Positions 16,723 to 53,927 of a stretch of DNA of 53,927 nucleotides are shown one piece after another. The stretch is from NCBI RefSeq assembly GCF_001194135.2, contig NC_069001.1, positions 37,227,090 to 37,281,016 of the forward strand. The letters run 5' to 3'. The notes under the pieces were generated by a model. The model was not told where the DNA came from. It did no database searches and saw nothing but the letters and a program-made list of their open reading frames with translations. Each line of letters begins with the position of its first letter. The stretch's first letter is position 1. Origin of the DNA: Octopus bimaculoides. Its lineage: Eukaryota. The position numbers and the translations under genes are program-made.

Positions 16723-17002
16723 CTAACATTACTCCAAATTTGTAAACATTAAACGCTATTAACTCTTTATTTATTGATTTATGGCGAAAATGAATTTCAT
16801 GTTAATGATAATTTTACAAAACTTCATCAACATGCCATATACGAAATCAATTGGAAAAGAAATTGAAAAGCGGCAGATTCCACATCCGAACAAATTAGTT
16901 TTCGTAGCACTGGATGACTTCCGATTCTCTTCTGTATGAAAGCCATATTCGTGTATGTTGAAGCTATGTCAAGGTGACACAATTCGTTACTGACACTTTG
17001 CC

Positions 17003-17024
17003 ATGCGCATGTTCAGCCGGATAT
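17003..17024 (+). promoter_or_regulatory. ATGCGCATG-TTCAG-CCGGAT core-promoter-like motif of Z3
   Basis: Same spacing as the six other plus-strand copies. Confidence 0.55.
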
Positions 17025-23631: not shown

Positions 23632-23652
23632 ATGCGCATGTTCAGCCGGAAC
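23632..23652 (+). promoter_or_regulatory. ATGCGCATG-TTCAG-CCGGAA motif of Z4
   Basis: Conserved cluster motif; the predicted donor is at 23831 and the acceptor at 24743-24744. Confidence 0.6.
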
Positions 23653-26168: not shown

Positions 26169-27149
26169 CTGTCAAGTCACTGTATAATGTGCTGTAAACA
26201 AAATATCTAACCATAAATGTATTCATAGAGAGAGGTAGATCTCTCTTTTTGAGATTATAATTTGTGTGACGACAACTAGTATCTAGAGTCTTGAAAATAT
26301 CTTACCACTTTGATTATTTTAATAAAAGTATTGTTGCAGAAAATAGTCATATATATTGCAACTAACATATTTCCTGAGGGAAGACAAAATACAATGAATT
26401 TATCGGATGTTGTGTGAAAATAACAGAAATAAAAGTGCAGAACAAATCAGGATAATAGTATGATGTCTTGTATGTAGTGTTTGTCTTTTATACATTCAAT
26501 CTTGTCTATTCCTCAACAAGTTACCAAAAGTAATCTCTTCAACCAACAGTGTGTGTATATAATCTATCTTTTTGAAATTTGTTCCTATATTCTACATTCT
26601 GTGTCAAGTGTTATGTATTTTTCTCAACAATGGAATGAGTCATGATTTAAATAATGGAATAAAGCTAAATGTTTTTGGCTTTAACATTGGAGAAAGTTAT
26701 TGGTGCTCTTGTACAATACTCCTATTACTTTCTTGACCCACTCCTACTTTTTGCACCTTCCCCTAATTGGGTAGGTTGCTGGAGTATTTTGGAGGGAGAC
26801 ATAGTACATAATGAGAGATTGTTTGGTTCTGTGGTGAGTGATGAATCAGTTTAATATAAGTGGAGAGAACAATGGCAATGGGTGGAAAATGGTTAACAAA
26901 AGATATGGTACCAGGTAGTGGAGAAAAAAGATGAAGTGGTATCAAGGGAGAACTGCAGTGAAGGACATGTACAGAGGAGGGAAAGGATATGAGGAGACAG
27001 GTCATGGTGGTCATTTGTGCACATGTATATATATATATATATATGTTTGCATACACACACACTGCTTTCAAAACTCAATTTCATTAAGCAGGGCTGGTTT
27101 TCTGAAGAACTGCATATTGTTAGTCTTCCTGTTCCTTTGACATATTTTC

Positions 27150-29033: not shown

Positions 29034-29055
29034 ATGCGCATGTTCAGCCGGAAGA
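29034..29055 (+). promoter_or_regulatory. ATGCGCATG-TTCAG-CCGGAAG motif of Z5
   Basis: Conserved motif; donor at 29195, acceptor at 29985-29986, uORF at 29994-30008. Confidence 0.6.
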
Positions 29056-30066
29056 TGAAATCGGTCTTCGAACACAAACTGTACTGTATTAATTTTAGCA
29101 AAATTTGTTGAACAAACGGCAGTATTTCGCACGTTATTATATATATGCATACACTTACACGCAGAGCGGACGAAATTTTCTCTTCAACAACGAGGTATTT
29201 TTATTGACTTTTCAGTGTTTCTTTCAGCAAAGCAATGTGGTCTTCTGCTTGACTCGTCATTTATGACGAATTTACACCGCAGAAACTCTCACAACAGTAG
29301 AACTGACCTCGGGCTATAAACAACGATGAGTGACCTGCTTGGATAGAACCGAATGTTATCGACATCTATTGTGTTGTTGAATATATATGTTAGACAATGT
29401 GATAGTGCTATATCTTAACTGGACGTTTCTATTAATATTGTTTTGGTTGTTTCGTCATGGCCAGTTACGGGCCTTGTGAAGCCTGTAATTTACTTACTCT
29501 TTCGAAAGCAAGTTTCTGTAGGTTAATACAATAGAAAAGCGTTGTACTTTGCTTAAAGTATTGTGATACAGAAAGTAAAGTAACAATGCAGAAAGCCAAT
29601 CATCAGAAGCGCACGGTTTAGAAATGCGAGTTTGTGTAGATCCCGCGACTTTGATGACTCTGACCACCCTTTAAATGACAGAATCTGCATAGATTCACAT
29701 TTGTCAACAGCTTCGTTCTTAAGATGGACCTTCGTGCCTGCGTTATATGAAGGTTACTCAACTTCCACTGTTCACATTTTTAGAAGTCCTTCGTTTTTTA
29801 TTTTATATTAGGTATGTTACACAATAGCCACGTGAAGCTATAATTTGTATACATGTAGACTTTATCGTTCAGTGATTGATGCAAATGTTTATATCTACAG
29901 TTTAACCAATATACAAGGGTGGAAATTTTTCTGCTGTTGAATATTCAGCTTCTCCTATATCTTACACCGTTTCTCTATTATTTCAGATATAACATGGTAT
30001 CTGCATAAAAGATTTTTTTTTCTTTAAGATTCATCGTTAATTACTTAAAAACTGCGATTATCATAT

Positions 30067-30380
30067 NNNNNNNNNNNNNNNNNNNNNNNNNNNNNNNNNN
30101 NNNNNNNNNNNNNNNNNNNNNNNNNNNNNNNNNNNNNNNNNNNNNNNNNNNNNNNNNNNNNNNNNNNNNNNNNNNNNNNNNNNNNNNNNNNNNNNNNNNN
30201 NNNNNNNNNNNNNNNNNNNNNNNNNNNNNNNNNNNNNNNNNNNNNNNNNNNNNNNNNNNNNNNNNNNNNNNNNNNNNNNNNNNNNNNNNNNNNNNNNNNN
30301 NNNNNNNNNNNNNNNNNNNNNNNNNNNNNNNNNNNNNNNNNNNNNNNNNNNNNNNNNNNNNNNNNNNNNNNNNNNNNNNN
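30067..30380. other. Assembly gap (N run) covering the Z5 start codon
   Basis: N characters. Confidence 1.
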
Positions 30381-32700: not shown

Positions 32701-33289
32701 CCCTTTTGTGATTTAAGGCCTATTTGGTTGCTATTTTTAGCTCACATGACAACCACCTCAATGACTGAAATATATTTGTCAACACATGCTTTCTCACAGA
32801 CAAAAGAGTAGTCATGTTTGGCTTGTTACTATGGTAACACTAATGTGTGGCTAAATTAGATGAAATTACCGAAAATTTTCAAGCCTTATAACAACTTATA
32901 TGTTGATTTGTGGCGAAAATGATTTTCATGGCATTAATTAGTATAGAAAAGTATATCATTATACTGAATATGAAATCAATTCGAACAGAAATTGAGACTG
33001 AAAATTGGCAGCCAAACCGAAAAGATCCGAATTGCAATCTACACCATCTGAAAGGTGTTTGCAGAAAATTTCATTTAAAAAACATTCGTTTTCTGGAAGT
33101 TATGAGGAAAGTTTGGCGGCGGAAGGAAACATTTGGGTAGATATGCCAGGTTTTCTCTATATGTGTTAGAAGTACAATTTTAGAAAAGAGAAACCGACAT
33201 TCCCAGTCGATCTGAAAAGCTACAGCAGCAGTTCACAAGCAACGAACTACAAGACGTCGACGACTGGTGTGAGCCGGTAACCTTCCACA

Positions 33290-33311
33290 ATACGCATATT
33301 CAACCGGAAGT
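33290..33311 (+). promoter_or_regulatory. ATACGCATA-TTCAA-CCGGAAGT motif of Z6
   Basis: Variant of the cluster motif; donor at 33532, acceptor at 34620-34621. Confidence 0.55.
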
Positions 33312-34057
33312 TGAATTCGGTCTTCAACCAGAAAGCCTAATATCAAGCTAATAATATTTTGATGTATCAATTGTGGAAGAAGCTTCCATATTTATGGCCC
33401 GTGTTATATTTATCAACAATATCTATTTATATATGTGTATGGTATATACACATGCACGCGCAGTGGAAGAAAATTTTTCTTCAACAACACGACTAGCCTG
33501 ACTTTCTAATAATACCTGTGATTCATACTAGGTACTTTTTTTTTATATCTATTTTTCATATTCAAACGTTTCTACTTTTCAACAACGCAATGCTTTTGTC
33601 TTTTGATTAGTCATAAAAGTCGTTACACTCAAGAAACTTTCATCACGTTCTAAACGGTCAGAACTGACCTAGGGATATAAACAATAACGATTGACCTGTT
33701 TGGATGGAATCAAATGCTATCGACTTTCTTTGTGTAGTTTAACATATATAATGTCAGTTAATGTGATGGTGAAGCTGTGGTGTGTACTGTCTTAGCTGGA
33801 TGTTTCCATTAATATTGTTGTGGTTTTCGTTATGTAGTCAAAGCCAGTTGCGGGCCTTGTTCAGCTTCCAAGTTACTCTTTCGAAAGTGACTTTCTATAT
33901 AGTATAACATTTATAATAGACAAGCGATGTGCTGTGCTTGAAGCATCGTGATACAGAAGTAACGTATTATGAAGGAAAGCTTCTAACAATGGAGAAAGGG
34001 AAATCCGAATAATCTGTATATGATTCATGCAAAAAAAGTCCCATTCTTATAGCCGCA

Positions 34058-34915: not shown

Positions 34916-35965
34916 ATGAATTTTGCAAATGAAATGCCAAAAGAGACAGGAAAAAAGTCAAATGAGTGTGATATCTGTGGTAAATCATTTGCACGCAGAA
35001 ACTATTTAACTGCTCACAAACGTATTCATACAGGGGAGAAGCCACATCAGTGTAATATTTGTGGTAAATCATTTATTTCAACTGGTCACTTAACTACTCA
35101 TGTACGTACACATACAGGAGAGAGGCCTTATCACTGTGATATCTGTGGTAAATCATATGCTCGTAGTAATCAATTAACTGTACATAAATACATTCATACA
35201 GGAGGGCAGCCATTTCATTGTGATATCTGTGGTAAATCTATGTCTTCAAAGAGTAAATTAACAGTACACAAACGCTTTCATACTGGAGAGAAACCATTTC
35301 ATTGTGATATTTGTGGTAAATCATTCTCTATTAGTAGTCACTTAACTACTCACAAATATATGCATACAGGAGAGAAGCCATATCACTGTGATATCTGTGG
35401 TAAATCATTCTCTGTAGGAAGTAACCTAAATACTCACAAACGACTTCATACAGGAGAAAAACCATACCACTGTGATATCTGTGGGAAAACATTATCTGAT
35501 CAAGGCAACTTAAATAGTCACAAACGTACTCATACAGGAGAGAAACGATACCTCTGTGATATTTGTGGTAAATCATTCTCTGATAGTAGGTCTTTAACTG
35601 CACACAAACGCAGTCACACTGGAGAAAAGCCATATCACTGTGAAATCTGTGGTAAATCATTTGCAACCACACGTACAGTAACTGTTCACCAACGTATTCA
35701 TACAGGACACAAGTCGTATTCATGCGATATCTGTGGTAAGTCATTTCTTCGCAGAGAATCATTATTTATTCACAAACGCATACATACAGGTGAGAAACCA
35801 TATCACTGTGATACCTGTGGTAAATCATTCACAGTATCAACTACTTTGACTACACACAAATGCAGACATACAAGGGAGAAACCATATCACTGTGATATCT
35901 GTGGTAAAGCATTTTCTCAAAAACGTCACTTCACTGCCCATGCATCTACTCATACAGGTAAATAA
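34916..35965 (+). CDS. C2H2 zinc-finger protein Z6: 12 fingers; the ancestral ATG at 34862 is interrupted by TAG at 34904
   Basis: 349-aa ORF from an internal Met; the upstream 14 codons align with the Z4 leader. Confidence 0.75.
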   Translation: MNFANEMPKETGKKSNECDICGKSFARRNYLTAHKRIHTGEKPHQCNICGKSFISTGHLTTHVRTHTGERPYHCDICGKSYARSNQLTVHKYIHTGGQPFHCDICGKSMSSKSKLTVHKRFHTGEKPFHCDICGKSFSISSHLTTHKYMHTGEKPYHCDICGKSFSVGSNLNTHKRLHTGEKPYHCDICGKTLSDQGNLNSHKRTHTGEKRYLCDICGKSFSDSRSLTAHKRSHTGEKPYHCEICGKSFATTRTVTVHQRIHTGHKSYSCDICGKSFLRRESLFIHKRIHTGEKPYHCDTCGKSFTVSTTLTTHKCRHTREKPYHCDICGKAFSQKRHFTAHASTHTGK

Positions 35966-37956
35966 CTGTGTCAATGTATATTGTGCTGTAAAAAATACCT
36001 AACCATAAATGTATTCACAGAGGGAGTTAGAGCTATCTTTCTAGACTATATAGTTCATGTAACTACATTTAATATCTACATTCATGAAATGACTTCCCTG
36101 TTTGATTATGATAAAGGTATTGTTTCAGAAAATAGTCATATGTATATTGTAGCTAACATACATGTCCCGAGAGATGACAATATACAATATATTTACTGGA
36201 TATTGTGTAAGTAACTGAGAAATGAATTCTTATAAATCATGAATAACATCACTGTACAGTTAAATTAGAAATAAAATTATGAACAATAAAAGAAAATTAT
36301 ACCACATTGGGATGTAAGTATGATGTCTTATATAGAATCTTTGTCTTTTATGCAATTAATCATGTCAACATGTAAATGAGATTTTGGATGATGATGATGA
36401 TTATTTCAGCAAAATAATAATTATGAATATTCAACAAAGAACTGAAACACATGAATCTAGGATAAAAGTGTTGGGATAAAATATTAGTGTCCTGTGTTGA
36501 TGTAGGGAGATTTGGTTACTATTTCTTGCATATTGTTGTTTCACTTTGAGGTCCATCATTTATTGTGTGAGCTAAGAATTGTCTGTCAGCTGTTTGCCAT
36601 GTATCAACACATACACACAGAAGAAGGAAATGTATTTAAAAAGTTTCATATGTCTGAATGGAGTGAAGGAAGAGGCTTTGGGAAAAAAAGTATTTGAAAC
36701 AAAATTTTTTGTTTTTTTGTCTGGAATTGAAATCGTCTGCACATGGAATTACAAAATAATGAAATAAAGACTTGTGAGGTGACAGTGGGAATTGAAATTT
36801 CAAAATGTTTTTTTTTTTATTTATTGACATAATCATAAATTTTAATATTGAAAATAAGAATCCTAATTGCATGGGCAAATGTCTTCTATAATTGCAGGCC
36901 AAGTGGATTTGATAAATGAAACTGAAAGTGGCTTTAGTATATACATATACACACACACACACACATATCATCATTGACTTATTATGTGACAGACTGAATT
37001 TATTGAGGCTGATTTTCTATGGCCACTTACACTTCCTGTAGCTAACTTGCCTATTTCCAAACAAAGTAATATTTCTCCATGGCCAGACATGTTTTCGTAG
37101 AATATTGGAAATAAATGACACTCATTTACCACATGATGTCTAGAGAAGAAAAGGCAAACATTGACATCATCGTTTAACATCTGTTATCCATGCTAACATG
37201 GGTTGGAGAGTTTGCAGGGGAGGCACTAGGCTACATTGGATGATTTAGCATGGTTTCTGTGACTGGATGCCCTTCCTAACACCATAATATATGTACTTGT
37301 TTATGTATAAGCAGTTTTATTTGCACTAAAGTATATGGACTGGATAGTTTGTACAGCTGGATGTACTTCCGATCACTAATCACCTTACAGCATGTACTGG
37401 TTGCTGTTTTTGTGCCACCAGCACTATTGAGATTGTCATGAAGTTTGGAATGTTACAAACCCTTAAAAAGGGGTGTTGGCTTTATACTAGAGGATGAGGG
37501 GTTAAAGTATGAGAAAGCATGGTGGGCAGAGTAGACTCTGAAAATGGAGCCGCATGGTTACTCACACTTAAAAGATTAGGTGAGAATGATCAGTAGAAGC
37601 TTGAAGGAGATAGCGTTGATGTGGTGTCAAGGCAGGTCATTCATTGTACAAGGTAAGTAGAAGTAGATGGATTGAGTGGTGATTTGCAATGTTATATAGG
37701 GGCCATGAGACCAAAGGAGAGGCAGGCAACAACAGTAAAGACTGCTTATATCTGAAAAGTTGGAGTGGAAGGTAGAATATTTATGATTATAGAAGTTCCT
37801 AAACTTCTTTTACACATGGTGCACCTTACAAGTCAAAACATTTTGGCCCAAACCTCACAGAGGCAATGACTAGTGATCAAGACCTTTGGCTATGTGCTCT
37901 ACTTAAGGGGTCCCTTAAGTGCGCCCACACTGGTAGCACATAAAGAAAAAATCAAC

Positions 37957-39460: not shown

Positions 39461-40599
39461 GTGTAAGTTTACATTTTAGGCTTCTGCATATTGAGTAAGG
39501 CCATTTCCCCGAGGACACCAGGGTCTAATCTTAAGGAAAATTTTATAAGGGTTTAAAGTTTGATTATTTTTACTCAATCAGAAAAGATTTGAAGACTGGC
39601 ATTTTCTGCATGAAAGCAAAACTTTAAGATGATGAATTTTTATCAAACAAAACATTACGTCAATGAATGTCCTAAGATACTTTGAAATTTTAATAAGTTT
39701 TAATGAATGAAGTCACGAAACGGTTGAACAGCCATGTAAATGATTTAAAAAGGAAAAAAATCCTCAACGAAATTTTTTGACATACTGCAAAAGAAACTAC
39801 GTTAATATTGGGGTTTAGGGTCAGTCTGACAAGTGGATGACCTGGGGTTAATCAATTGGTAACATTTTTCTAAAATTCCTCTCTGAAAACTTTTTTTGAC
39901 AAATTATAAAAAAAAAATTAATAAATAAACTTAAAGAAACTCTACGTTAGGCATGTAAACATGAACTGAACTGAAACTACAGCCTAACGTGTTTGAATTT
40001 TCGCTTTAAAAGATGTATAGTTTACTGTAAAGCGAAAATTCAAAAACGAAAGTCAGTATATGAGTGCTCGTTAAAGAAAATACACGTAGTAGTTGTGGTA
40101 GTGTTAAACAGACAATAGCTTCGCTTGTTACTATACAAACAGGCACCAATGTGTTGGATGCTTTCCAGTCGCTGAAATTATTTGCAAAATTTAAAAGCTA
40201 TTGAGTTATTATTAATTTAATTAGCATACAAAATTGAAGCAAATACGAAAACAACTGGAACAAAATTTTAAAAAATAGAAAACTGTAGCAGCAATAGAAA
40301 AGATCTGGACTCCTTTTGATTTGCAATTTAATTTTCTTCATTATTTATTTCTTGGGGAGAAAATGAGTGCAATTTTTATCATCAGCCTGTAAAACTACAT
40401 TTTCTGGAGATTTGAACGACTTATAGTGTTTCGTTGAAATTGAACATCAGAACCACTAGAAGCAGATGCAAGAAACAACTACAACATATCGACAACGATC
40501 GTTGAAATTGGATTCATTATCCGTGTTACAACTTGTGAATACCCAAAAGCGGTGTCTTTCATCTGTTTAGCATCTCATTCCACTGCTAACATTCTGCCA

Positions 40600-40621
40600 A
40601 TGCGCATGATCAACCGGAAGT
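40600..40621 (+). promoter_or_regulatory. ATGCGCATG-ATCAA-CCGGAAGT motif of Z7, with adjacent CCAAT
   Basis: Conserved motif; donor at 40856, acceptor at 42069-42070, uORF at 42080-42094. Confidence 0.6.
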
Positions 40622-41068
40622 TGACTTCGACGTTCACTCATCAGATGCCAGCTTTGTATTACGAATTGAATCGCATATGTATATAAGATAATTTATTAGC
40701 TTGACGCATAAAGCAGTGAAGAATTAATCATATTTATCTCATATCTTCTAATGAATTTATCTATAATGTTATACATTGTATATACGCAATGGGAGTAATT
40801 TCAGCATCCTGACCATCGTCACTGATTTGCTCTTTATAGCTGTGATTCATACGAGGTATTTTTGTTGATTCTTTTCTCATTCAAACGTCGTTTCTACTTT
40901 CACAACGCCTCTATTTGATTGATCTGTCATATATTTCGCGACATTCTTGAAAACAATCAGTCTTTGAAACACAAGTCTGCACAGTTAGCACTGACGTAGG
41001 GATATAAACAACGTCATATCACTTTTCAGGCCAGAGAACTGTCACCGTCCACTATTGTGTGTTCACCA

Positions 41069-41950
41069 TATTGGGCTGGAACAAAAGTTCGTACCGTTTC
41101 TATGCAAAATTCAAAAACAATACATTGATACTTGTGCATTTCTATATTTGACCATGTGTCCCATTTTGTTCCTCTATCTTTCGTCCTTATCGTATCAGCT
41201 TGATGAGCATAGCTTCCCTTTGCATCTGTTAGGGTCAGGAACTGTATTAAGTTGTTTTTACAGCCTTCCAAACAACTGCAGTTCTTCCCGTTAATGTAAT
41301 TTTGTAGATATCGAAATAACGGTTATCCGAAGGTGCTAGATTAGGTGATTATGAAGGATTTGGTAGTTCATCCCCGCCAAACTATATCAATTTCTACCAT
41401 TTGAAGGGAAATATAAAACTGAGAGTTGTCCTGAATGAAAGCGAACCGTTACCATTAGCCAATTAAGGACCTTTGTCACCGATTTCCTCCTTTAATAAGT
41501 CTAATTGACAACAGTAATTGTCAGAATTCAACATCTGATATTAAGGAAGAAGCTCGTCATACATAATTGTACCATCCCACCAGATACACAGCGTCGCTTT
41601 TTTTCCAATACTCACTGGCTTTTCTGATTAAGGGGATTCATTTCCTTTTCTCTAGAAGCTTTTTCATTGGTGAAGAATCACTTTTGATCGTTTTTTTCTA
41701 AAAGCTGGTGGTTTTTGTTGTGCTCGGGCAGAGAATTGCAGATGGAAATACCGTTAAATTTGTTTCCATTAAATTATTAGGTACCAGAAGTTCACGTATC
41801 GAAGTATTCATATGAAAAATGTGAAGTATCTCAGTGATGTCTTGTTTTTGTGTGGTCTTGGTTATTATCAAAGACTGCAGTTCTGCTGGAATGTTCACGG
41901 TGTCCCTGATAAAAATTTTCAGGTCTCAGCCAGGCGAACCACGTACAAAC
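41069..41950 (-). mobile_element. Tc1/mariner (mariner-type) transposon relic in the Z7 5'UTR intron
   Basis: LVPNNLMETNL (WVPHEL-like), LCIWWDG..YDELLP, ELPNPS*SPNLAPSD (YSPDLAPSD-like) and LFRYLQN motifs; one TIR, TA-TTGGGCTGGAACAAAAGTT, at 41069. Confidence 0.85.
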
Positions 41951-42376
41951 AGTCGCTATATATTTTTATATATGCAGGCATCAAACAAGAGTGTACGATG
42001 TAGTTTTAATAATTAAAATTTAACTTCAATCGTTGATGTAAATTCTTATACTATTTCTCTACTATTTCAGAAGTAACAGATGGTATTGGTATAGAAGAAT
42101 TTATTTACTTCAGATTCGTCATCAATATTTCTCATCATTTAAATACTAAAGAATGATGTTATTTCAAATAGAAATGATTGGTGGGATGACTGTGAAATAT
42201 TTCTTGTGAACTGTGATTATTATATTATTAACAGTGTAACTTTTTCTTTCACTATCTGGAATATGTTCAAGAGTGAGCTTCTGCCATCAACAGATATCAA
42301 TAAACATGGAATTTGAAGGAAATTTTTAAGTAGAAAATATGAATAAAACATAGCAATTAGTGAGAAAAGAACAGTA

Positions 42377-43558
42377 ATGGAAAATACATTACGTGAGACC
42401 CCAATTAAAACAGAGTCTGAAGGCATTGATTTTCCTGATGAGATGCTGAAGGTGATGGAAAAAACATCATACCACTGTGGTATATGTGGTAAATCATATT
42501 CTGAGAGAGGAACATTGACTAAACACAAACGTATTCATACGGGAGAGAAACTGTATCAGTGTAATATCTGTGGTAAATCATTCATTTCAAGTAATTACTT
42601 AACTATTCATATACGCACTCATACAGGAGAGAAGCCATATCAGTGTGATATCTGTGGTAAATCATTCGCTCACAGTTCTCATTTAAAAGTCCATAAATAC
42701 ATTCATACAGGAGGGCAGCCATGCCATTGTGATATCTGTGGTAAATCTATGTCTTCAAAGAGTAAATTAACAGTACACAAACGCTTTCATACTGGAGAGA
42801 AACCATTTCATTGTGATATTTGTGGTAAATCATTCTCTATTAGTAGTCACTTAACTACTCACAAATATATGCATACAGGAGAGAAGCCATATCACTGTGA
42901 TATCTGTGGTAAATCATTCTCTGTAGGAAGTAACCTAAATACTCACAAACGACTTCATACAGGAGAAAAACCATACCACTGTGACATCTGTGGGAAAACA
43001 TTATCTGATCAAGGTAACTTAACTAGTCATAAACGTATTCATACAGGTGAGAAACGATACCTCTGTGATATTTGTGGTAAATCATTCTCTGATAGTAGGT
43101 CTTTAACTGCACACAAACGCAATCACACTGGAGAAAAGCCATATCACTGTGAAATCTGCGGTAAAGCGTTCAGCACCACACGTCAAGTAACTGTTCACCA
43201 ACATATTCATACAGGAGACAAGTCATATTCATGCGATATCTGTGGTAAGTCATTTCCTCGTAATGAATCATTATTTGTTCACAAACGCATACACACAGGT
43301 GAGAAGCCATACCACTGTGATATCTGTGGTAAATCATTCACAGTATCAACTACTTTGACTACACACAAACGCAGTCATACAGGAGAGAAACCATATCACT
43401 GTGATACCTGTGGTAAATCATTCACTACAACAAGTTACCTAACTAAGCACAAACTCATTCACACGCGAGATACGCCATATCATTGTGATATCTGTGGTAA
43501 ATCATTTTCTCAAAAACGTCACTTCACTGCCCATGCATCTACTCATACAGGTAAATAA
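42377..43558 (+). CDS. C2H2 zinc-finger protein Z7: 13 fingers
   Basis: 393-aa intact ORF with leader [19 protein letters not shown]. Confidence 0.95.
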
Positions 43559-43919
43559 CTGTGTCAATGTATATGGTGCTGTAAAAAATACGTAACCATA
43601 AATGTATTCACAGAGGGAGTTAGAGCTATCTTTCTAGACTATATAGTTCATGTAACTACATTTAATATCTACATTCATGAAATGACTTCCCTGTTTGATT
43701 ATGATAAAGGTATTGTTTCAGAAAATAGTCATATGTATATTGTAGCTAACATACATGTCCCGAGAGATGACAATATACAATAAATTTATTGGATATTGTG
43801 TAAGTAACTGAGAAATGAATTCTTATAAATCATGAATAACATCACTGTACAGTTCAATTAGAAATAGAATTATGAACAATAAAAGAAAATTATACCACAT
43901 TGGGATGTAAGTATGATGT

Positions 43920-44493
43920 NNNNNNNNNNNNNNNNNNNNNNNNNNNNNNNNNNNNNNNNNNNNNNNNNNNNNNNNNNNNNNNNNNNNNNNNNNNNNNNNN
44001 NNNNNNNNNNNNNNNNNNNNNNNNNNNNNNNNNNNNNNNNNNNNNNNNNNNNNNNNNNNNNNNNNNNNNNNNNNNNNNNNNNNNNNNNNNNNNNNNNNNN
44101 NNNNNNNNNNNNNNNNNNNNNNNNNNNNNNNNNNNNNNNNNNNNNNNNNNNNNNNNNNNNNNNNNNNNNNNNNNNNNNNNNNNNNNNNNNNNNNNNNNNN
44201 NNNNNNNNNNNNNNNNNNNNNNNNNNNNNNNNNNNNNNNNNNNNNNNNNNNNNNNNNNNNNNNNNNNNNNNNNNNNNNNNNNNNNNNNNNNNNNNNNNNN
44301 NNNNNNNNNNNNNNNNNNNNNNNNNNNNNNNNNNNNNNNNNNNNNNNNNNNNNNNNNNNNNNNNNNNNNNNNNNNNNNNNNNNNNNNNNNNNNNNNNNNN
44401 NNNNNNNNNNNNNNNNNNNNNNNNNNNNNNNNNNNNNNNNNNNNNNNNNNNNNNNNNNNNNNNNNNNNNNNNNNNNNNNNNNNNNNNNNNNNN
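43920..44493. other. Assembly gap (N run)
   Basis: N characters. Confidence 1.
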
Positions 44494-45861
44494 GGGATCT
44501 AGTTTTTTTTTTCATTTGCAAAATTTGCATTTTTTAAAAGATAGTAAAAAATCTGAAAATCAGCTATAATAAAGTTTTCCAGTGTAATTGCTATGAAGGT
44601 ATGATGTTTTGGAGGGAAAAGTTTCAGAGGTTTAAAAAAAACAGGGTATCTATAGCCAATAGTGAGACAGAAATTTTCTGTTTAGCGAAGCAGTGTCAAC
44701 TTTAAGGTGAAATTTATAGTTTATCGTCTGCGAAATGACCTCTTCATTCCAGGTTTCTAAATAAATAGAAATACCTAATTAAATCAACATGTATAATCTT
44801 ATAGCTTCTTTTTCTCTTCATTGATTGTATGTTTTTATTATTTTTAAAATTTATATTAATATATTTGTCTGCATGTGTTTACTTTATGCATATTTCAGTA
44901 TTATGTATACCCGTCCTGTATTTGTGTACATTATTAATATATAAGTGCGTACGTGTGTGTCCGTGAAAAAGAGGCGTCTGTCTCCAAAACTTGAAAGTTG
45001 AGTAAAGTTTTCATGTTAGGATTTGTAAACTACGGTAAGAATAATACTGGTCAACAAAGAATTTGTCCCCCCAAAATAATACCTGTTTTTGCATACAGAA
45101 TTCAAAAATAATGTCAAATTATCTGTATTAAGTTCATAAATTCCATTCACCTTCATAATGCCAAGAAAATTTATAAACGTCGCAAACTACTTTTGCTATA
45201 TACGTAAAATATCATGACAATTGACAAAAACATCTATAACAAAATTCTAATTGATAAATATAGATTTTTATTAAAACAAAAACTACGTGGGTGAAGTAAT
45301 TCTCGTGGTGTGCAAAATCAACACGTGGGTGAAACAACGCAACTTGCGGTTGTCATGGTAACAAGCTGTTAATGCCTCGCTGTCTGCTGATTGGCTAAAA
45401 TTACCCAAATTTCCCAACTTTGATTACAAATAACATCAGATTTTTTAATTTACGAGATAAAATAATTGGTTGGTCGTAATCAAAATTCAGAATTGCATTG
45501 ATACACCATAATTTGAAGCAAAATAAAAGGTGGCTCATTTTGCGAACGAGAAAGACTAGATCCATGTTTTTGAAGTGAAAGTTCAGTATGTTAGTGCTTG
45601 TTAAAGAAAATATCCGTTGTGGTACTATTAAGCAGACAATAGCTTCACTTGAGAAAAATGAGTGCGATTTTCGTCATCAGTATGCAAAGTTACATTTTCT
45701 GAAGATTTGAATGACTTATAGTGTTTGGTTGAAATTTAACATCAGAACCACTAGAAGCAGATGCAAGAAACAACTACAACATATCGACTACGATCGTTGA
45801 AGTTGGATTCATTATCCGTGTTACAACTTGCGAACACCCAAAAGCGGTGTCTTGGGCATTC

Positions 45862-47202
45862 ATGTGTTATTTCGTCTGTTTAGCATCCCATTCTGCCAAT
45901 GCGCATGATCACCCGGAAGTTGACTTCGACGTTCACCCATCAGATGACATCTTTATATTTAAAACAGAGTCTGAAAGCATTGATTTTCCTGATGAGATGC
46001 CGAAGGTGATGGAAAAAACATCATACCAGTGTGGCATATGTGGTAAATCATATTCTGAAAAAGGAACATTGACTAAACACAAACGTATTCATACGGGAGA
46101 GAAACCATACCACTGTAATATCTGTGGTAAATCATTTGCTAGAAGTAATGACTTAACAATACACAAACGTATTCATACTGGTGAGAAACCATATCACTGT
46201 GATATCTGTGGTAAATCATTTGCTCACAGTTCTCATTTAAGTGTCCATAAATACATTCATACAGGAGGGCAGCCATACCATTGTGATATCTGTGGTAAAT
46301 CATTCACTGCAAAGAGTAAATTAACAGTACACAAACGCTTTCACACTGGGGAGAAGCCATTTCAATGTGATATTTGTGGTAAATCATTTTCTATAAGGAG
46401 TCATTTAACAACTCACAAATATATTCATACAGGAGTGAAACCATATCACTGTGATATCTGTGGTAAATCTTTCTCTGCAAATAGCCAATTAACTATACAC
46501 AAACGCATTCATACAGGAGAAAAGCCGTATCACTGTGATATCTGTGGCAAACCATTGTCTGACCCCCGTAACTTAGCTAGTCACAAACGTATTCATACTG
46601 GAGAGAAACGATATCTCTGTGATACTTGTGGTAAATCATTTTCTCACAGTGGACAATTAACTGCTCACAAATGCATTCATACCGGAGAAAAGCCATATCC
46701 CTGTGAAATCTGTGGTAAATCATACTCTGTCAAAAGTGAATTAATAGTTCACAAACGCATTCATACAGGAGACAAACCTTATTCCTGTGACATCTGTGGC
46801 AAGTCATTTCCTCGTAGAGACACGTTACCTATCCACAAGCGCACTCATACAGGTGAGAAGCCATATCACTGTGATATCTGTGGTAAATCATTCACAATAT
46901 TAAGTAATTTAACTATCCACAAACGCAGTCATACAGGGGAGAAGCCATACTGTTGCGATATCTGTGGTAAATCATATACTACATCAAGTGGTTTAACTAC
47001 ACACAAACACATTCACACAGGAGTGAAACCATATGCTTGTGATATCTGTGGTAAATCATTTACTGTTACAAGTACCTTAACTAAACATAAACGTATTCAC
47101 ACAGGAGAGAAACCATATCATTGTGATGTTTGTGGTAAATCCTTCACTTCTACAAGTAGCTTAACGAAACACAAACGCATTCACACACGAGATATGCCAT
47201 AG
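45862..47202 (+). CDS. C2H2 zinc-finger protein Z8: 14 fingers; start uncertain (ATG 45862 or 45997)
   Basis: Open frame; the listed 45847 start is GTG; the ancestral MENT.. start is deleted; TAG at 47200. Confidence 0.75.
45899..45920 (+). promoter_or_regulatory. ATGCGCATG-ATCAC-CCGGAAGT motif of Z8, fused almost directly to the coding exon
   Basis: 45650-45958 aligns with 40360-40660 upstream of Z7. Confidence 0.6.
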
Positions 47203-47280
47203 CACTGTAATATCTGTCGTTCATCATTTTCTCAGAAACGTCACTTAATGGCACATGTATCTATTCATTCAGAAGAATAA
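47203..47280 (+). pseudogene. Relic terminal finger of Z8 behind a premature stop
   Basis: HCNICRSSFSQKRHLMAHVSIHSEE* is in frame after the TAG. Confidence 0.85.
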
Positions 47281-49419
47281 CTGTGTCAGTGTATGAAGAA
47301 ATACTGAACTTTAAATGTATTCACAGAGGAAGGTAGAACTATCTTTCAAAACTATATTTTATATAACAACTAATATCTACATTCATTAGATAACTTACCA
47401 CTTTTGTTACAAAAAAATACTTGATACATGTTGCTGCTGACATTTTTCCTGCGGAAAGATAAGGTACAGTTTATTGGACATTCTGGGCAAATAACTAAGA
47501 AATGTATTCTCATAAATTGTGATTGTTGATGCCTCCTCCTATGTTTACCATTTGCTGCCTTCACCTCTATCACCATCTGTCGTTCCTTTTTCTCATTCTT
47601 GCATGCTGAACTAAACATTCATTATACCAGTTCTCTTATATTCATCTTCCTATAGTTTGAGTGTTTGACCTGACAGTGCTTCCACCACCTGCTCTCTTTT
47701 CCAACTGGTGTAATGATGTATCAGTCCTACAGCAAGACTCATGTTCCTGTCAATCTATTATACTTTAACCTCTGAACAGCTGCATAAAGCTACCTCCTTC
47801 AATACTGTATCTTAGTCCGTTGAGGGCTTTTGTAAATATGTGATGTCACTAATGCTGGTACCATGTGAAAAGGAACCCAGTACACTCTGTAAAATGATTG
47901 GTGCTAGAAAGGGCATCCAACTGTAGAAACTATGCCAGAGTTTGGCGCAGACCTCTCACTTGTCAATTTATTTCAACATGGAAAATTGCTGTTAATTGAT
48001 GATGAGTACTTCAGCAAAATAACAGATGTAATGAGTATTTAACAAAGGATTGAAATACATGTATCTGGAGAAATTGTTGGAGGGGAAAACATTAGATGTT
48101 GATGTAGGGAGGTTTGGCTGCTATTCCTAACAACTTTATCGATGCCTGTGTCTTGCTGTTTGGTATATCTATTAGGCATGCATCTCAGCATGGTCACAGT
48201 CTAATGACTGAAACAAGTAGAAGTTTAAAGTTTCATGGAAGGGTGGTGAGGAAGGAACAAACTTTGAAAAACAAGGATTTTTAATCTTTTTTTTTTTTTA
48301 TCAGAACCAAGATCTCCATAATTTGAAGCATGTTATTTTAAAATACATAAAAATTGTGAGCAGGAGGTGAAAGTAAAAATTTCAAAATGCTTTGTTTTAT
48401 TTATTGGTGTATTTGGAAGTTTTACTGTTGAAAATAATAATCATAACTGCAATTTCAGAAAATAACAAAAGACGAAGACAGGTGGTGTATATAATTCTTT
48501 ATTGTAGTAAAGTTAACTTACAGCTGGTATGATCATTATAGGTTTACTTAATCAGCCTATTGATTGGTTGGGAACACCTGAACAGCCCAGAGTATTAATG
48601 TTACTTTTGTCAGAGTCATCTCTGATTATAACCAAGCAGAACACAGAAGGAATGGTACAAGCATGGGGATGAGGGGAGCAAAAAGAGGCAATAATTATAA
48701 GGTAAGTGGAAGAGATAAAGAGGAAATGGGAAGAGAGGTGACGATTTGGAAAACAAGAACTAAAGAGAAGAGAAGAAAAGAAAGAAATAGAGGATGGCTG
48801 AAATTAAGAACAAGGACAGTCATGAAAAAGTGTTTGAAATTGAGTCAACACACAAAATTATTTACTTTGTCTTAAGGTTAAATACTGTCCAGATATTGTG
48901 TTGAAATTTGATATAGGCCCCTTACTCTCATGGTCAACTTAAATCTTTAATATAGGGTCACACTAGGTGTGAATTGTATTGGAAAAAAATGAATGAAAAA
49001 TCAGCAGTAAACTATATCACGATCGAAAGGTAGAAAAAGCTCTAGTCAGAGTCCGTATTAAATAGAGATGGAGAGGAAAAATAGGAATAGAATAAAATGA
49101 AATATATTTTAAAAATTAGGTAAAATTGAAGGGCAAATATAATTTCTAATTAAGTTATAAGAACGAGAATTAAAACTTAAAAAATTAAAATACATTATTT
49201 ATATATATGTGTGTGTGCCTGTGTTGCTCAAATGTACAGAAAACAAAAGACAAAGACAGGCGAGTGAACAAAAAGCAGGTGTATTAGCTTGCCGCTTGGG
49301 GAGAGTCGGAAAACCTTTGATGTTTTGATCCTATACTCTTCAACAAAGGGATGAATGGGAAAAGTGTGTTGGGATTAGCATATATGTATATATAATAATA
49401 ATTGTAATCAACCTGGTAA

Positions 49420-50062: not shown

Positions 50063-50251
50063 NNNNNNNNNNNNNNNNNNNNNNNNNNNNNNNNNNNNNN
50101 NNNNNNNNNNNNNNNNNNNNNNNNNNNNNNNNNNNNNNNNNNNNNNNNNNNNNNNNNNNNNNNNNNNNNNNNNNNNNNNNNNNNNNNNNNNNNNNNNNNN
50201 NNNNNNNNNNNNNNNNNNNNNNNNNNNNNNNNNNNNNNNNNNNNNNNNNNN
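50063..50251. other. Assembly gap (N run)
   Basis: N characters. Confidence 1.
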
Positions 50252-50279: not shown

Positions 50280-50301
50280 ACGCGCATATTCAACCGGAAG
50301 T
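50280..50301 (+). promoter_or_regulatory. ACGCGCATA-TTCAA-CCGGAAGT motif of Z9
   Basis: Conserved motif; donor at 50668, acceptor at 52800-52801, uORF at 52811-52825. Confidence 0.55.
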
Positions 50302-51157
50302 GGAATCCGGCCTTCGGCTACAAACGTTACCCCTGTTCTGCGGTGAGTTTTTGACCCATTGAAATTTTTCAAATTTATTTGTTTGATGCATAAGCTAACA
50401 AGTCATATTTATCTCATGTGCTATAATATATTTATATTCAATATTGTAACACACACACACACACACGCATATATATATAATTATGACAGAAAAGGGAAAT
50501 AATGAAAGCTTCTAACAATGCAGACAGTTTTACAAAAAATGTTTCTATTTCGGGCGCAAAAGTATATCTTTAAAAGAAAGCAATCCAAGATATGTATACA
50601 CACAGTAATTTTCTCCAATAGCACGACCACCATTCCTAGTTCCTAAAAAAGCTGTGATTCATACGAGGTATACTTATTGGGTTTTTTCTCATTGAAACAT
50701 CGTCTCTACTTTCATCACTGTAATGTGTCTTACATGATAATCTGTTATAAAACGTGTTACTTTAAAACAAACTGACTTCTTTGTCAAACAGGATTGACCT
50801 ATGACTGAACAACCACAGATTGCTTTTTCTGGACATAGGGGCTAATGTTATCGTCCTTTGGTGTGTAGTTAGGACAGTATGAGGGTGGAACTGTAATCTG
50901 TGACTTAATCTAGATCTGTCGTTATCGTGTTGATTTCTTATAGTTACTGTCAGTTATGGGCCTTGATAAGGCTTTCTCGAATTTTACTGCAGTTCCCTTG
51001 ATATGTATACACACACACACACACACACACCCAGTAGTCCCCCGGTATTTGCAGGGGTTACGTTTCTACAACACCCGTGAATAATGAAAAACAGCGAATA
51101 TGGGACGCGGTCCATAAAAATGCCTATAAATGTGAAAATATAACGTAATTTATATAC

Positions 51158-53124: not shown

Positions 53125-53927
53125 ATGGAAAATACATTGAGTGAGACACCAATTACAATTAAGACAGAGATTGAAAGCATTGACATTTCTGATGGGATGT
53201 TGAATGAGATGAGAAAAACTTCAAACTACTGTGACATCTGTGGTAAATCATTTTCTCTAAAGAAATCTTTAACTACTCACAAACGTATTCATACAGGAGA
53301 GAAACCATATCAGTGTAATATCTGTGGTAAATCATTCATTTCAAGTAGTTACTTAACTACTCATATACGAACACATACAGGAGAGAAGCCTTATCACTGT
53401 GATATTTGTGGTAAATCATTTGCTCGAAGTCATCAGTTGACTGTCCATAAATACATTCACACAGGAGGGCAACCGTACCATTGTAATATCTGTGGTAAAT
53501 CAATGTCTTCGATTAGTAAATTAACAGTACACAAACGCTTTCATACTGGAGAGAAACCATTTCATTGTGGTAAATCATTCTCTATTAGTAGTCACTTAAC
53601 TACTCACAAATATATTCATACAGGAGTGAAACCATATCACTGTGATATCTGTGGTAAATCATTCTCTGTAGGAAGTAACCTAAATACTCACAAACGACTT
53701 CATACAGGAGAAAAGCCATACCACTGTGATATCTGTGGGAAAACATTATCTGATCAAGGCAACTTAACTAGTCACAAACGTATTCATACAGGAGAGAAAC
53801 GATACCTCTGTGATGTCTGTGGTAAATCATTTTCTCACAGTGGACAATTAACTGCTCACAAATGCATTCACACAAGAGACAAGTCACATATATGTGATAT
53901 CTGTGGTAAATCATTCTCTATTAGTAG
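53125..53927 (+). CDS. C2H2 zinc-finger protein Z9, partial (runs off the window end)
   Basis: ATG at 53125, [20 protein letters not shown]..., open to the end; at least 8 fingers, with finger 5 lacking its second Cys; not in the ORF track because it has no stop. Confidence 0.9.

Follow-up and report, generated by a model that had tools for sequence, protein, structure and literature searches.

Z8, a 5'-truncated member of a tandem zinc-finger gene cluster in Octopus bimaculoides, retains an intact array of 14 fingers

Introduction

The clusters of KRAB zinc-finger (ZNF) genes of vertebrates follow birth-and-death evolution, in which genes arise by tandem duplication, gain or lose fingers by unequal exchange, and undergo gene conversion with their neighbours. 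Their framework is constrained, the helix positions are relaxed or diversifying, and many copies are truncated or dying. The octopus cluster described here is similar in its tandem duplication, unequal exchange, conversion, framework omega of ~0.1, helix omega of 0.5-1.3, and frequent truncated or dying copies. It differs from the vertebrate clusters by having no KRAB or other effector domain and by a helix omega that in none of its copies significantly exceeds 1. In coleoid cephalopods, C2H2 zinc-finger genes have expanded in tandem in a lineage-specific manner (Albertin et al. 2015, as cited in PMC10547256; Holzinger et al. 2025, PMC12513265). In PMC10547256 and PMC12513265 the words exon, intron, promoter, and pseudogene have zero occurrences, and gene structure, promoters, and pseudogenes are not described there.

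The window, i.e., the whole stretch of O. bimaculoides DNA that was analysed (53,927 nucleotides, or 54 kb), contains nine poly-C2H2 zinc-finger paralogues (Z1-Z9) arranged in tandem on the same strand. They share with the coleoid expansions the same-strand tandem clusters of poly-ZNF genes, the TGEKP linkers, a short leader (MEN.LCE..IK..SE.IDF..), and the absence of KRAB, SCAN, and BTB; the species-specific character of such expansions also fits the lack of a close orthologue. One difference is that no database match exceeded ~70% identity, so that the sub-family is distinct from those published. Another lies in one copy, Z8, which is without the 5' exon, intron, and start codon present in its neighbours. 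This copy is a 5'-truncated member of the tandem cluster of cephalopod-type poly-C2H2 zinc-finger genes. We regard the structural and historical part of our explanation (the truncation, the older lineage, and the intact array) as very probable, and the full explanation, which extends to a present-day function of Z8, as evenly poised between right and wrong.

Results

Gene plan and family context

The cluster provides a sequence-based plan of these ZNF genes: motif, non-coding exon 1, intron, uORF, and single coding exon. A bipartite motif is followed by a non-coding exon 1 ending CGAG/GTATTT, an intron of ~1.2 kb, and an acceptor TTTCAG/A; exon 2 then carries ~300 nt of 5'UTR with a 4-codon uORF, the ATG (MEN..), a leader of ~30 aa, the fingers, and the stop. 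The donor block (GCTGTGATTCATACGAG/GTATTT) has 5 matches in the window against 0 expected, the acceptor (TTTCTCTATTATTTCAG/A) has 6 against 0.23 expected, and neither has a copy in 44494-47600. In Z7, these sites map to 40856 (donor) and 42070 (acceptor). Lesions are present elsewhere in the cluster: a stop with a decayed tail in Z3, a stop in Z6, and a 9-nt deletion in finger 5 of Z9.

The predicted 401-aa product of Z8 contains 14 stretches matching PF00096 (E 7e-79) and 13 matching PF13465 (E 7e-111) in Pfam. Its tandem C-X2-C-X12-H-X3-H units, TGEKP-like linkers, and 28-residue period are those of C2H2 (Krueppel-type) poly-zinc-finger proteins. Pfam gave no match to KRAB (PF01352), SCAN (PF02023), or BTB in Z8, Z7, and Z1, or in the 59 aa that precede finger 1. 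The tandem cluster, the short MEN..IDF.. leader, and closest relatives among cephalopod ZNFs place the family with the lineage-specific expansions of cephalopods. Among the best matches of a protein search with the 5' part of Z8, those with a name were almost all from Octopus bimaculoides, O. vulgaris, and O. sinensis (49-73% identity) and had similar leaders; the highest identities in this search were 66-73%. The search with full-length Z8 was dominated by long vertebrate ZNFs; among the matches listed, the only one from Octopus was 47% identical. The Z1 leader had no match in its search, and Rfam had none in the window. The O. bimaculoides relative L003 shows coding similarity only: motif, donor, and acceptor are absent from it, and its gene range starts at the ATG. 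The ENA contigs L001 and L002 were dropped as evidence on Z8, being short and from a different paralogue of a related animal.

A deletion removed the 5' gene parts of Z8

The features that define the truncation are the following.

45577-45651, + strand: distal edge of the duplicated unit, common to Z7 (40048-40127), from alignment
45655-45959, + strand: upstream (promoter-region) fragment, homologue of Z7 40360-40660, from BLASTN and alignments
45956-45962, + strand: deletion junction with ATT/ATTA microhomology (3-4 nt) and one extra T in Z8, the equivalent of Z7 40660 being joined to that of 42405

BLASTN against the window matched Z8 45655-45959 to Z7 40360-40660 (86.4% over 308 columns, E 2e-101), Z8 45959-47064 to the coding exon of Z7 at 42405-43510 (85.1% over 1106 columns, ungapped, E 0), and the distal edge to its Z7 counterpart (80% over 81 columns, E 5e-14). 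Between the distal block and the next one, Z7 has 228 bp (40128-40355) that are extra relative to Z8. What is missing from Z8 is Z7 40661-42404 (1,744 bp). Judging from the rest of the cluster, the change is a genomic deletion in Z8, because sequences that lie within the missing interval are retained in other paralogues, namely the donor block, the acceptor, the short uORF, and the MEN.. start codon. The letters around the junction read ..GCTTTGTATTACGAA on the 5' side of Z7, ..CCCAATTAAAACAGAG on its 3' side, and ..TCTTTATATTTAAAACAGAG in Z8, and the junction is free of notable inverted repeats. The deleted stretch begins 35 nt past the motif and extends to codon 10. With it went the donor of exon 1, the intron and its acceptor, the 5'UTR with the uORF, the ancestral ATG, and the first 9 codons (MENTLRETP), together with a conserved block of ~90 nt that precedes the donor and a GCATAAA-like element. 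The preliminary description of this locus had proposed a deletion of ~1.75 kb relative to Z7 at an ATT microhomology, with exon 1, intron, uORF, and ancestral ATG gone, and this is borne out by BLASTN, by the alignment of the junction, and by the absence of donor and acceptor.

An intronless coding unit is also the end product of retroposition or cDNA-mediated intron loss, and one could imagine that Z8 was processed or converted through a spliced RNA intermediate, especially as the 3' breakpoint adjoins an AG (TTAAAACAG/AG) and two short ENA contigs of a related gene start resembling each other at the same TTAAAACA. Yet one breakpoint falls 196 nt short of the conserved donor and the other 334 nt past the conserved acceptor, so that exon sequence and the ATG were removed too, and Z8 retains nucleotides from both sides of the putative sites. 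In contrast to retrogenes, Z8 also keeps upstream, non-transcribed homology to Z7 as far as 45577, and its 3' flank stays collinear with those of the paralogues up to ~47517 and carries no poly(A) tract. We rejected a retrocopy or cDNA conversion from the junction positions (Z7 40660/42405 against donor 40856 and acceptor 42070), and consider it extremely improbable.

A second possibility is that the true Z8 has a normal exon 1, intron, and 5'UTR, and that the draft skipped 1.7 kb. Tandem paralogues are difficult to assemble, and the draft sequence of the window has three N gaps, including one (43920-44493) that lies 1.1-1.5 kb upstream of Z8. However, on either side of the junction the divergence from Z7 and from all other copies is 5-15%, which shows that Z8 is not a chimera of other paralogues. 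The 3-4 nt common to both sides would be far too short for the collapse of a k-mer graph, and a scaffolding skip would normally leave Ns, of which there are none at the junction. An assembly artefact is accordingly improbable, and we retain a genomic deletion as the reading of the junction.

Fourteen intact fingers and the loss of the last one

Downstream of the junction, Z8 contains these features.

45961-46023, + strand: remnant of the N-terminal leader, 21 residues, with MENTLRETP and the ancestral ATG missing, from alignments
46024-47199, + strand: 14 intact C2H2 fingers in 84-nt units with TGEKP-type linkers, from a regular-expression count, Pfam, and TRF
46948-47115, + strand: insertion of two extra fingers, F12 and F13, that separates ancestral fingers 11 and 12, from comparison with neighbouring fingers
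47200-47202, + strand: TAG stop where the paralogues have TAT (Tyr), ending the product before the ancestral last finger, from alignment
47203-47280, + strand: cut-off 15th finger HCNICRSSFSQKRHLMAHVSIHSEE and ancestral TAA stop, from alignment

The claim that the 14-finger frame is intact holds on three counts: the 14 PF00096 stretches, the tandem repeat found by TRF (period 84, 14.2 copies), and the 14 C2H2 units counted by regular expression. The linkers are HTGEKP, HTGGQP, HTGVKP, HTGDKP, and HTRDMP. All 48 zinc ligand codons tested in 12 of the fingers are intact (48/48), the other two fingers are intact by eye, and the ORF has no internal stop and no frameshift. The extra fingers F12 and F13 are 74-81% identical to the neighbouring fingers and represent an old duplication. 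An extra finger near the C-terminus, as first described, is indeed present, in the form of two old extra fingers, from which the last finger, cut off by the change of TAT to TAG, has to be subtracted. This TAG is the only lesion within the ORF of Z8. The nonsense codon at 47200 that removes the last finger had been overlooked in the preliminary description. The cut-off 15th finger is 77-80% identical to finger 13 of the paralogues, has CRSSF in place of CGKSF, and has drifted at 9 of its 25 residues, in contrast to the 14 clean fingers before it; Z8 was therefore under selection well after the nonsense mutation.

Selection and mosaic history of the array

We recomputed dN/dS with F12 of Z8 taken as the inserted finger and not as ancestral finger 12. 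Against the consensus of the rest, Z8 has an omega of 0.24 (0.16-0.34), with 0.10 (0.05-0.16) in the framework and 0.78 (0.42-1.40) in the helices, and six other paralogues have overall, framework, and helix values in the same ranges. The 14-finger array has thus been under purifying selection of normal strength, in an estimate whose signal comes mostly from before the deletion. A neutral dN/dS across the ORF, named beforehand as an outcome that would speak against the initial interpretation, is not what the comparison of helix with framework returned. Frameshifts, stops, lost residues, and a dN/dS of ~1, as in a neutral pseudogene, are not what Z8 displays, and it is still compatible with a very young pseudogene.

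At synonymous sites, too, Z8 is the most divergent member (dS 0.44 vs 0.14-0.32 for the others). The core helices had been described as otherwise invariant and changed in Z8 (TAKSKL, SIRSHL, SANSQL, SDPRNL). In the other paralogues they are nearly invariant rather than invariant, and, at the canonical contact positions -1, 2, 3, and 6, finger 5 of Z8 is unchanged (ISHT); there are changes in finger 4 (one), finger 6 (three), and finger 7 (one). Only one helix change can be dated after the split of Z7 and Z8.

46303-46309, + strand: cluster of 4 substitutions that spans 7 nt of finger 4, ATGTCTTCA to TTCACTGCA, replacing MSS by FTA, from the comparison of Z7 and Z8

The dating depends on which segments of Z7 and Z8 are sisters. 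In the leader, F1, and F3-F4, the dS between Z7 and Z8 is 0-0.19, and both are 0.42-1.6 from Z4. In F2 and F5-F11, it is Z7 and Z4 that are close (0.10-0.27), and Z8 is 0.44-0.98 from both. Z7 is thus a gene-conversion mosaic, whose F2 and F5-F11 are Z4/Z6-like, and in the segments where it is sister to Z8 there is no excess of Z8-derived changes. Since the dS of Z8 is high, its helix omega is the family norm, and Z7 is a mosaic, most helix differences of Z8 predate the deletion, and the proposal that a new specificity came with the deletion is not supported. A caution follows for evolutionary readings: comparing Z8 with an apparent sister that is a gene-conversion mosaic overstates the change in the helices.

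The retained upstream element and the candidate starts

Between the distal block and the fingers, four features bear on whether and how Z8 could be expressed.

45854-45871, + strand: Z8-specific insertion of ~18 nt, a local imperfect duplication that holds ATG 45862 and is missing in Z7, from alignments
45895-45924, + strand: conserved bipartite upstream motif GCCAATGCGCATGATCACCCGGAAGTTGAC, composed of the palindrome ATGCGCAT and TCAnCCGGAAGTTGA, with a copy upstream of every paralogue in the window
45997-45999, + strand: first in-frame ATG after the motif, with gagATGc as its context, candidate start of a 401-aa product, from the sequence
46009-46011, + strand: second in-frame ATG, with the best context (gtgATGg), candidate start of a 397-aa product; it overlaps the TGA closing the upstream ORFs of the +1 frame

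The motif lies upstream of all nine paralogues, and in Z8 it is now 73 nt from the conserved in-frame Met. The fragment at 45655-45959 is 91-95% identical to Z7 in well-aligned blocks and, motif aside, is restricted to Z7 and Z8. The motif of Z8 has 1 change in 46 nt, which is not significantly better than its 91-95% identical flank. The preliminary description had the deletion weld the promoter onto the coding exon: a motif-bearing upstream region was joined to the exon, and the motif is only a putative core promoter. The true core promoter may have gone with the deletion, because the ~90 nt block before the donor and the GCATAAA-like element were deleted.

The Met at 45997 is conserved in position in Z1, Z3, Z4, Z6, Z7, and Z9. 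It is preceded by out-of-frame ATGs at 45899, 45905, 45944, and 45992, all four of which end at the TGA at 46007. Z8 had been described as uORF-free; with these four ATGs before 45997, it would be so only if transcription started downstream of 45992.

The start had been placed at ATG 45997 or at ATG 45862. The former is plausible, as is 46009, and both appear more plausible than 45862, which is an unlikely start because it lies within the Z8-specific insertion upstream of the motif. Translation from 45862 would extend the protein at its N-terminus and turn the former promoter motif into an 11-residue peptide, which had been read correctly from the DNA. The finger frame is indeed open for 76 codons upstream, back to the TGA at 45730 (P ~0.006 in shuffles), and ATG 45862 is in frame with it. 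However, this ATG has a weak context (attcATGt), and for it to be used transcription would have to begin upstream of the one conserved promoter-like element; the 76-aa stretch matches nothing in Pfam; its differences between Z7 and Z8 are not biased towards third positions (2/5); and a comparable run of 72 open codons exists in another frame of Z7, which makes the low stop density a property of the DNA and not of a coding frame. On the grounds of Pfam, third positions, and the Z7 stretch, we do not accept the frame that is open ahead of the junction as real coding sequence, and the extended protein is very improbable. A caution for annotation is that the ORF finder reports for Z8 an ORF of 451 aa that begins with GTG and passes through promoter-derived DNA.

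Discussion

Z8 is very probably the sole full-length survivor of an older sub-lineage. It shares the 5' flank, leader, F1, and F3-F4 with Z7, the remainder of Z7 having been overwritten by Z4/Z6-like sequence. The helix differences, the two extra fingers, and the high dS of Z8 therefore reflect age and not a burst after the deletion. The 1,744-bp deletion, with its microhomology of 3-4 nt, stripped Z8 of its 5' gene parts below the motif. Z8 might still be in use, by intronless transcription from the retained upstream element and translation from the conserved internal Met at 45997 or from 46009, giving a 14-finger protein of 397-401 aa without most of the conserved N-terminal leader and without the last finger. 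The truncation itself is ordinary turnover in a fast-evolving gene family.

Timing bears on whether the array is still in use. The deletion is younger than the split of Z7 and Z8, itself at ~3-7% divergence per lineage. In neutral simulations, the probability of finding no stop and all 48 ligands intact was below 5e-5 (0/20,000) at 74 or 148 substitutions, 0.0013 at 37, and 0.094 at 14. A dead array of this size would keep its 48 ligands and stay free of stops only to ~1.5% divergence, which makes lasting constraint several-fold likelier than death at a random time after the split, under a uniform prior on the date of the deletion.

The main alternative is that Z8 is a young unprocessed pseudogene, silenced by the loss of its transcription start region, splice sites, and start codon, and intact because the event is very recent (~1.5-3% divergence or less). 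As in unprocessed pseudogenes and 5'-truncated duplicates, the first-exon donor, intron, 5'UTR, and start codon were lost by genomic deletion in one tandem copy, every conserved 5' part except the distal motif is gone, and the last finger has already fallen to a nonsense codon. Young pseudogenes should be common here because the cluster is full of lesions (Z3, Z6, Z9, and the terminal stop of Z8), as expected under birth-and-death turnover. The simulation still allows 14 neutral substitutions (P = 0.09), and a transcript that began upstream of 45992 would carry out-of-frame ATGs overlapping ATG 45997. An exact look-up of nine ORFs or start variants, from Z8 and its paralogues, found none in a collection of 15 billion proteins. 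Against a pseudogene, Z8 has a 1.2-kb ORF without neutral decay, 14 fingers without stop, frameshift, or loss of ligands, and an upstream element with two in-frame ATGs directly before the ORF. The segments sister to Z7 lack an excess of derived changes, and the cut-off finger has drifted beside clean ones. Integrating the simulation over deletion dates spread evenly since the split, an intact dead array is expected only ~8-19% of the time. Overall, we consider a young pseudogene possible and rather doubtful.

If Z8 is instead in use, it may be a minimal ZNF gene: a conserved double-palindrome promoter element ~70-85 bp from the start, no intron, no 4-codon uORF, no conserved leader, and an array kept by selection, with a binding specificity of its own because Z8 alone of the older sub-lineage survived unconverted. 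This we put forward tentatively, as an idea that falls somewhat short of an even chance. If true, Z8 would offer a natural experiment on the roles of 5' intron, uORF, and leader in cephalopod ZNF genes, and it might act as a leaderless competitor of its neighbours. As a copy in which all 5' parts except the motif were deleted, it can be used to test transcription from the motif alone and the need for intron, uORF, and leader. Z8 is not the only copy to have lost its ancestral reading start: that of Z6 is also lost, to a stop at 34904, and its finger array is still intact.

A zinc-finger gene cluster with a common upstream element

The 53.9-kb window, in which G+C content is 30-43% except in one N-gap-bearing block at 24.5%, contains nine poly-C2H2 zinc-finger paralogues, Z1 to Z9. 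Upstream of every one of them lies a motif, ATGCGCATG-n-TCA-n-CCGGAAGTTGA-(A/C)-TTCG.

Zinc-finger paralogues, upstream motifs and N gaps
2404-3852, minus strand: Z1; motif at 5908-5915 and 6151-6158, minus strand
10631-11947, minus strand: Z2; motif at 13916-13923, minus strand
from 17984, plus strand: Z3; motif at 17002-17011
24981-26168, plus strand: Z4; motif at 23633-23660
5' end inside a gap, end at 31493, plus strand: Z5; motif at 29035-29058
34916-35965, plus strand: Z6; motif at 33286-33315
42377-43558, plus strand: Z7; motif at 40596-40625
45847/45997-47202, plus strand: Z8; motif at 45895-45924
from about 53125, past the window edge, plus strand: Z9; motif at about 50285-50304
30067-30380, 43920-44493 and 50063-50251: N gaps

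On both strands, the motif precedes the coding exons by 1-2.9 kb. It is made up of two palindromes, ATGCGCAT together with TCAAC-CGGAA-GTTGA, is much better conserved than its flanks, and looks like a cluster-wide promoter or regulatory element. Its palindromes resemble NRF1-like and ETS-like sites, which are usually found close to transcription starts.

Conservation and splice-site consensus suggest an ancestral gene plan made of the motif, a non-coding exon 1, an intron, and one coding exon that carries a long 5'UTR. A conserved block of ~90 nt, about 170-360 nt downstream of the motif, ends in the donor GCTGTGATTCATACGAG|GTATTT (five matches at <=3 mismatches vs 0 expected; Z3 and Z5 also have the donor in the alignment). 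The acceptor TTTCTCTATTATTTCAG|A lies ~1.2 kb beyond the donor (six matches vs 0.23 expected), directly followed in Z4, Z5, Z7 and Z9 by a 4-codon uORF, ATG GTA TyG sYA TAR, and about 300 nt past the uORF by the conserved start AAT(T/A)ATGGAAAA. The presumed intron holds a second conserved block, CAGTnAGAACTGACCTAGGGATATAAACAAC, with a TATA-like GATATAAA, at 40975-41010 in Z7, about 23955-23990 in Z4, about 33650-33684 in Z6 and about 29330-29370 in Z5; deleted in Z8, it is a candidate for either an internal, alternative promoter or a regulatory element of the intron.

A deletion removed the 5' parts of Z8 downstream of the motif

When compared with the window by BLASTN, Z8 aligns with Z7 in three segments: 45577-45651 with 40048-40127, 45655-45959 with 40360-40660 (86.4%, E 2e-101), and 45959-47064 with 42405-43510 (85.1% across 1106 ungapped columns). 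The 1,744 bp of Z7 at 40661-42404 are absent. The junction reads TCTTTATATTTAAAACAGAG in Z8, against GCTTTGTATTACG and CCCAATTAAAACAGAG on the 5' and 3' sides in Z7, with a microhomology of ATT(A) and one additional T in Z8. The jump from promoter side to coding exon at an ATT microhomology, noted in the preliminary description, is therefore real, and the outline given there is accurate. This is a deletion in Z8 and not an insertion in Z7, because the other paralogues keep conserved blocks in and around the interval; the loss of everything between 35 nt past the motif and codon 10 is well supported. Exon 1, the intron, the uORF and the ancestral ATG, conserved in the paralogues, are indeed gone, and neither donor nor acceptor has a copy within 44494-47600.

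An assembly artefact at the junction is very improbable. Each flank differs by 5-15% from all the other copies, and the junction is hence not a chimera of paralogues; the flanks have only 3-4 nt in common, which is insufficient for k-mer collapse; and Ns are absent there. We also rejected a retrogene: the 5' breakpoint falls 196 nt before the donor and the 3' one 334 nt past the acceptor, flank homology is retained, and there is no poly(A) tract. That the promoter was welded onto the coding exon can reasonably be inferred rather than observed, because the 90-nt block preceding the donor, gone from Z8, might just as well make up all of exon 1 and have a start of its own.

Z8 also lacks 228 bp of Z7 (40128-40355) that separate the two upstream homology blocks; weak partial copies occur at 16668-16781 and, on the minus strand, at 22493-22558, and a small repeat may have inserted here in Z7. 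Two short, low-coverage contigs, L001 (150-175, ENA assembly ERZ23872314) and L002 (150-175, ENA assembly ERZ23872312), carry the same related zinc-finger gene (..QSKSIDFTEEMPKDIEKTSYHCDICKKSF..) behind unrelated upstream sequences. Their match begins at TTAAAACA, the position of the Z8 3' breakpoint, which may be coincidental or mark a splice site or fragile site; L002 has a ~36-nt tandem repeat just upstream of it.

Start codons available to Z8

Three ATGs lie in the finger frame of Z8: 45862, 45997 (gagATGc) and 46009 (gtgATGg). Use of the first, which had been proposed as an alternative start, is disfavoured, since it is placed upstream of the motif within an 18-nt Z8-specific insertion (45854-45871) and would need transcription to start upstream of the sole promoter-like element. 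Met 45997 occupies a leader position conserved in Z1, Z3, Z4, Z6, Z7 and Z9, and both it and 46009 precede finger 1, such that either would give the whole 14-finger array. Z8 can be called uORF-free only if its transcription begins beyond 45992. Four +1-frame ATGs (45899, 45905, 45944 and 45992) all close at TGA 46007-46009. This stop overlaps ATG 46009 (gTGATGg), which in a transcript would be a stop/start overlap of the kind permitting re-initiation.

Upstream of the junction, the finger frame also runs without a stop through 76 codons (45730-45960; P about 0.006 in shuffles). We rejected it as coding: the stretch has no Pfam match, its Z7/Z8 differences show no third-position bias, and Z7 has a comparable 72-codon open stretch in a different frame (40444-40659). 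The scarcity of stops in this promoter-side fragment is probably a compositional effect.

The Z8 finger array

The 14-finger frame is intact, as previously described: 46024-47199 encodes 14 intact 28-residue C2H2 units, matched by 14 PF00096 stretches and a TRF period of 84, and no KRAB, SCAN or BTB domain was found in Z8. The extra finger reported near the C-terminus is a net gain, composed of two added units and one lost, with a terminal nonsense codon that had been missed. Finger by finger, the first eleven units of Z8 match ancestral fingers 1-11, and finger 14 matches ancestral finger 12 (81-85% identical); HTRDMP follows it in place of the HTRDTP of the paralogues. Fingers 12 and 13 (46948-47115) are additional, only 74-81% identical to neighbouring fingers, and derive from an old internal duplication. 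A TAG at 47200, TAT in the paralogues, cuts off the ancestral 13th and last finger, which has since drifted (CGKSF to CRSSF; 9/25 residues differ from Z7).

At contact positions -1, 2, 3 and 6, Z8 is identical to Z7 in fingers 1 and 3, to Z9 in finger 8, and to all others in finger 5 (ISHT, with S>R at +1). It carries one change in finger 4, three in finger 6 and one in finger 7, and differs from all others in fingers 2 and 9-12, several of which vary among the other paralogues too.

A mosaic relationship between Z7 and Z8

Z8 is the most divergent plus-strand copy: its nucleotide identity to any other is 81-84%, compared with 85-94% among the others themselves. Its 5' flank is 91-95% identical to that of Z7 in clean blocks. 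We compared Z7 42554-43700 with 25164-26300 and 35045-36100. In the 5' flank, leader and fingers 1 and 3-4, Z7-Z8 dS is 0-0.19, and both are distant from Z4 (0.42-1.6); in fingers 2 and 5-11, Z7-Z4 dS is 0.10-0.27, and Z8 is 0.44-0.98 from both. The Z7 3' flank nearly matches that of Z6. On the simplest reading of these sequences, Z7 and Z8 would be sisters at their 5' ends, the Z7 body would mostly have been replaced later by Z4/Z6-like sequence via gene conversion or unequal exchange, and Z8 would be the only copy to represent an older sub-lineage in full.

Z7 and Z8 have the flank and leader that border the deletion in common, so their split came before it. For most helix differences (those in fingers 5, 6 and 7) no connection to the deletion can be drawn, since Z7 is uninformative there. 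The only Z8-derived helix change after the split is MSS>FTA in finger 4, made by four substitutions within 7 nt (46303-46309). The reported change of core helices thus stands for fingers 4, 6 and 7, not for the contacts of finger 5, and the change can be placed after the Z7/Z8 split for finger 4 alone. The near-invariance of the core helices in Z3-Z7 and Z9 coincides with very low dS (Z7-Z4 0.10 in fingers 5-7), which suggests that these copies were recently homogenised, not that they are under special constraint.

Selection on the array and the fate of Z8

We estimated dN/dS by the Nei-Gojobori method with corrected finger orthology, comparing Z8 with a consensus built from the six remaining plus-strand paralogues. 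Neutral evolution was simulated by random substitutions, at the observed transition/transversion ratio, on the 12-finger consensus, an intact array having no stop and all 48 zinc ligands.

Substitution rates in Z8 and survival of simulated arrays
All sites: dN 0.104, dS 0.440, omega 0.24 (bootstrap 0.16-0.34)
Framework: dN 0.042, dS 0.440, omega 0.10 (bootstrap 0.05-0.16)
Helix (-2 to +6): dN 0.344, dS 0.439, omega 0.78 (bootstrap 0.42-1.40)
148 substitutions (observed number): intact in 0/20,000
74 substitutions: intact in 0/20,000
37 substitutions: intact fraction 0.0013
14 substitutions: intact fraction 0.094

Given these omega values, the frame did not evolve neutrally, an outcome compatible with the earlier view of Z8. 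The remaining paralogues behave alike, with omega of 0.19-0.37 overall, 0.10-0.25 in the framework and 0.48-1.12 in the helices. Z8 has 1.4-3 times the dS of the others, and its helix dN scales in step: its helices are unusual in nothing except the amount of time. The simulation limits neutral drift of the array to at most about 1.5-3% divergence.

At ~3-7% divergence per lineage since the Z7/Z8 split, 30-70 neutral substitutions are expected in the tested 1,008 nt, and survival of a dead array falls roughly as exp(-n/5.8), n being the number of substitutions. Had the gene died with the deletion, at a moment drawn evenly from the period after the split, the array would be intact about 8-19% of the time, against about 100% for a gene kept under selection. 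With a sceptical prior, in which roughly one such deletion in four spares gene function, the odds for continued constraint are somewhat better than even. Lesions are common in the cluster, which favours a young pseudogene: besides the terminal stop of Z8, the Z3 frame ends at stop 18938 after nine clean fingers, followed by decayed ones, and Z9 finger 5 (53560-53575) has a 9-nt deletion of GATATCTGT (Asp-Ile-Cys), leaving PFHC-GKSF without the second zinc-binding Cys in an intact reading frame. Tolerance of N-terminal loss finds support in Z6, a second copy unable to make a normal N-terminus, where an in-frame stop (34904) lies 14 codons past the ancestral ATG (34862), the uORF ATG is also lost, and the intact 12-finger array is readable only from internal Met 34916 or 34931. 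Given uncertainty in both the prior and the split estimate, we give Z8 an even chance of still being functional, regard a young pseudogene as less likely and the artefact as far less probable, and leave the remainder to minor alternatives. The most interesting possibility is that of a putative working intronless, leaderless gene driven by the relocated motif.

The decayed units behind the Z3 stop (18938-19370), with Cys/His losses, stops and frameshifts, appear to be a duplicated F3-F6 finger segment and provide an example of neutral decay within the cluster.

Relatives and comparable systems

None of nine ORFs and start variants is present in a 15-billion-protein collection, where the Z1 leader also gave no match. 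The best matches to the Z8 5' part are almost all proteins of Octopus bimaculoides, O. vulgaris and O. sinensis (49-73% identity), several with a similar short leader, e.g. MENELCE..IK..SESI.., and they point to a cephalopod, probably an octopod, as the source. Large lineage-specific tandem C2H2 expansions are known in coleoid cephalopods (PMC12513265; PMC10547256, citing Albertin et al. 2015). Z8 belongs to the C2H2 poly-ZNF superfamily and to such cephalopod-type expansions, outside the KRAB, SCAN and BTB classes. It matches vertebrate ZNF clusters in its birth-and-death and gene-conversion dynamics, and shares with them a constrained framework, relaxed helices, finger gain and loss, and truncated copies; the deletion is an ordinary kind of event for such a family. 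Between Z1 and Z2, a 181-aa ORF on the minus strand (7165-7710) with a sub-threshold PF17919 match (RT RNase H-like domain, E 0.057) is probably a decayed retroelement fragment.
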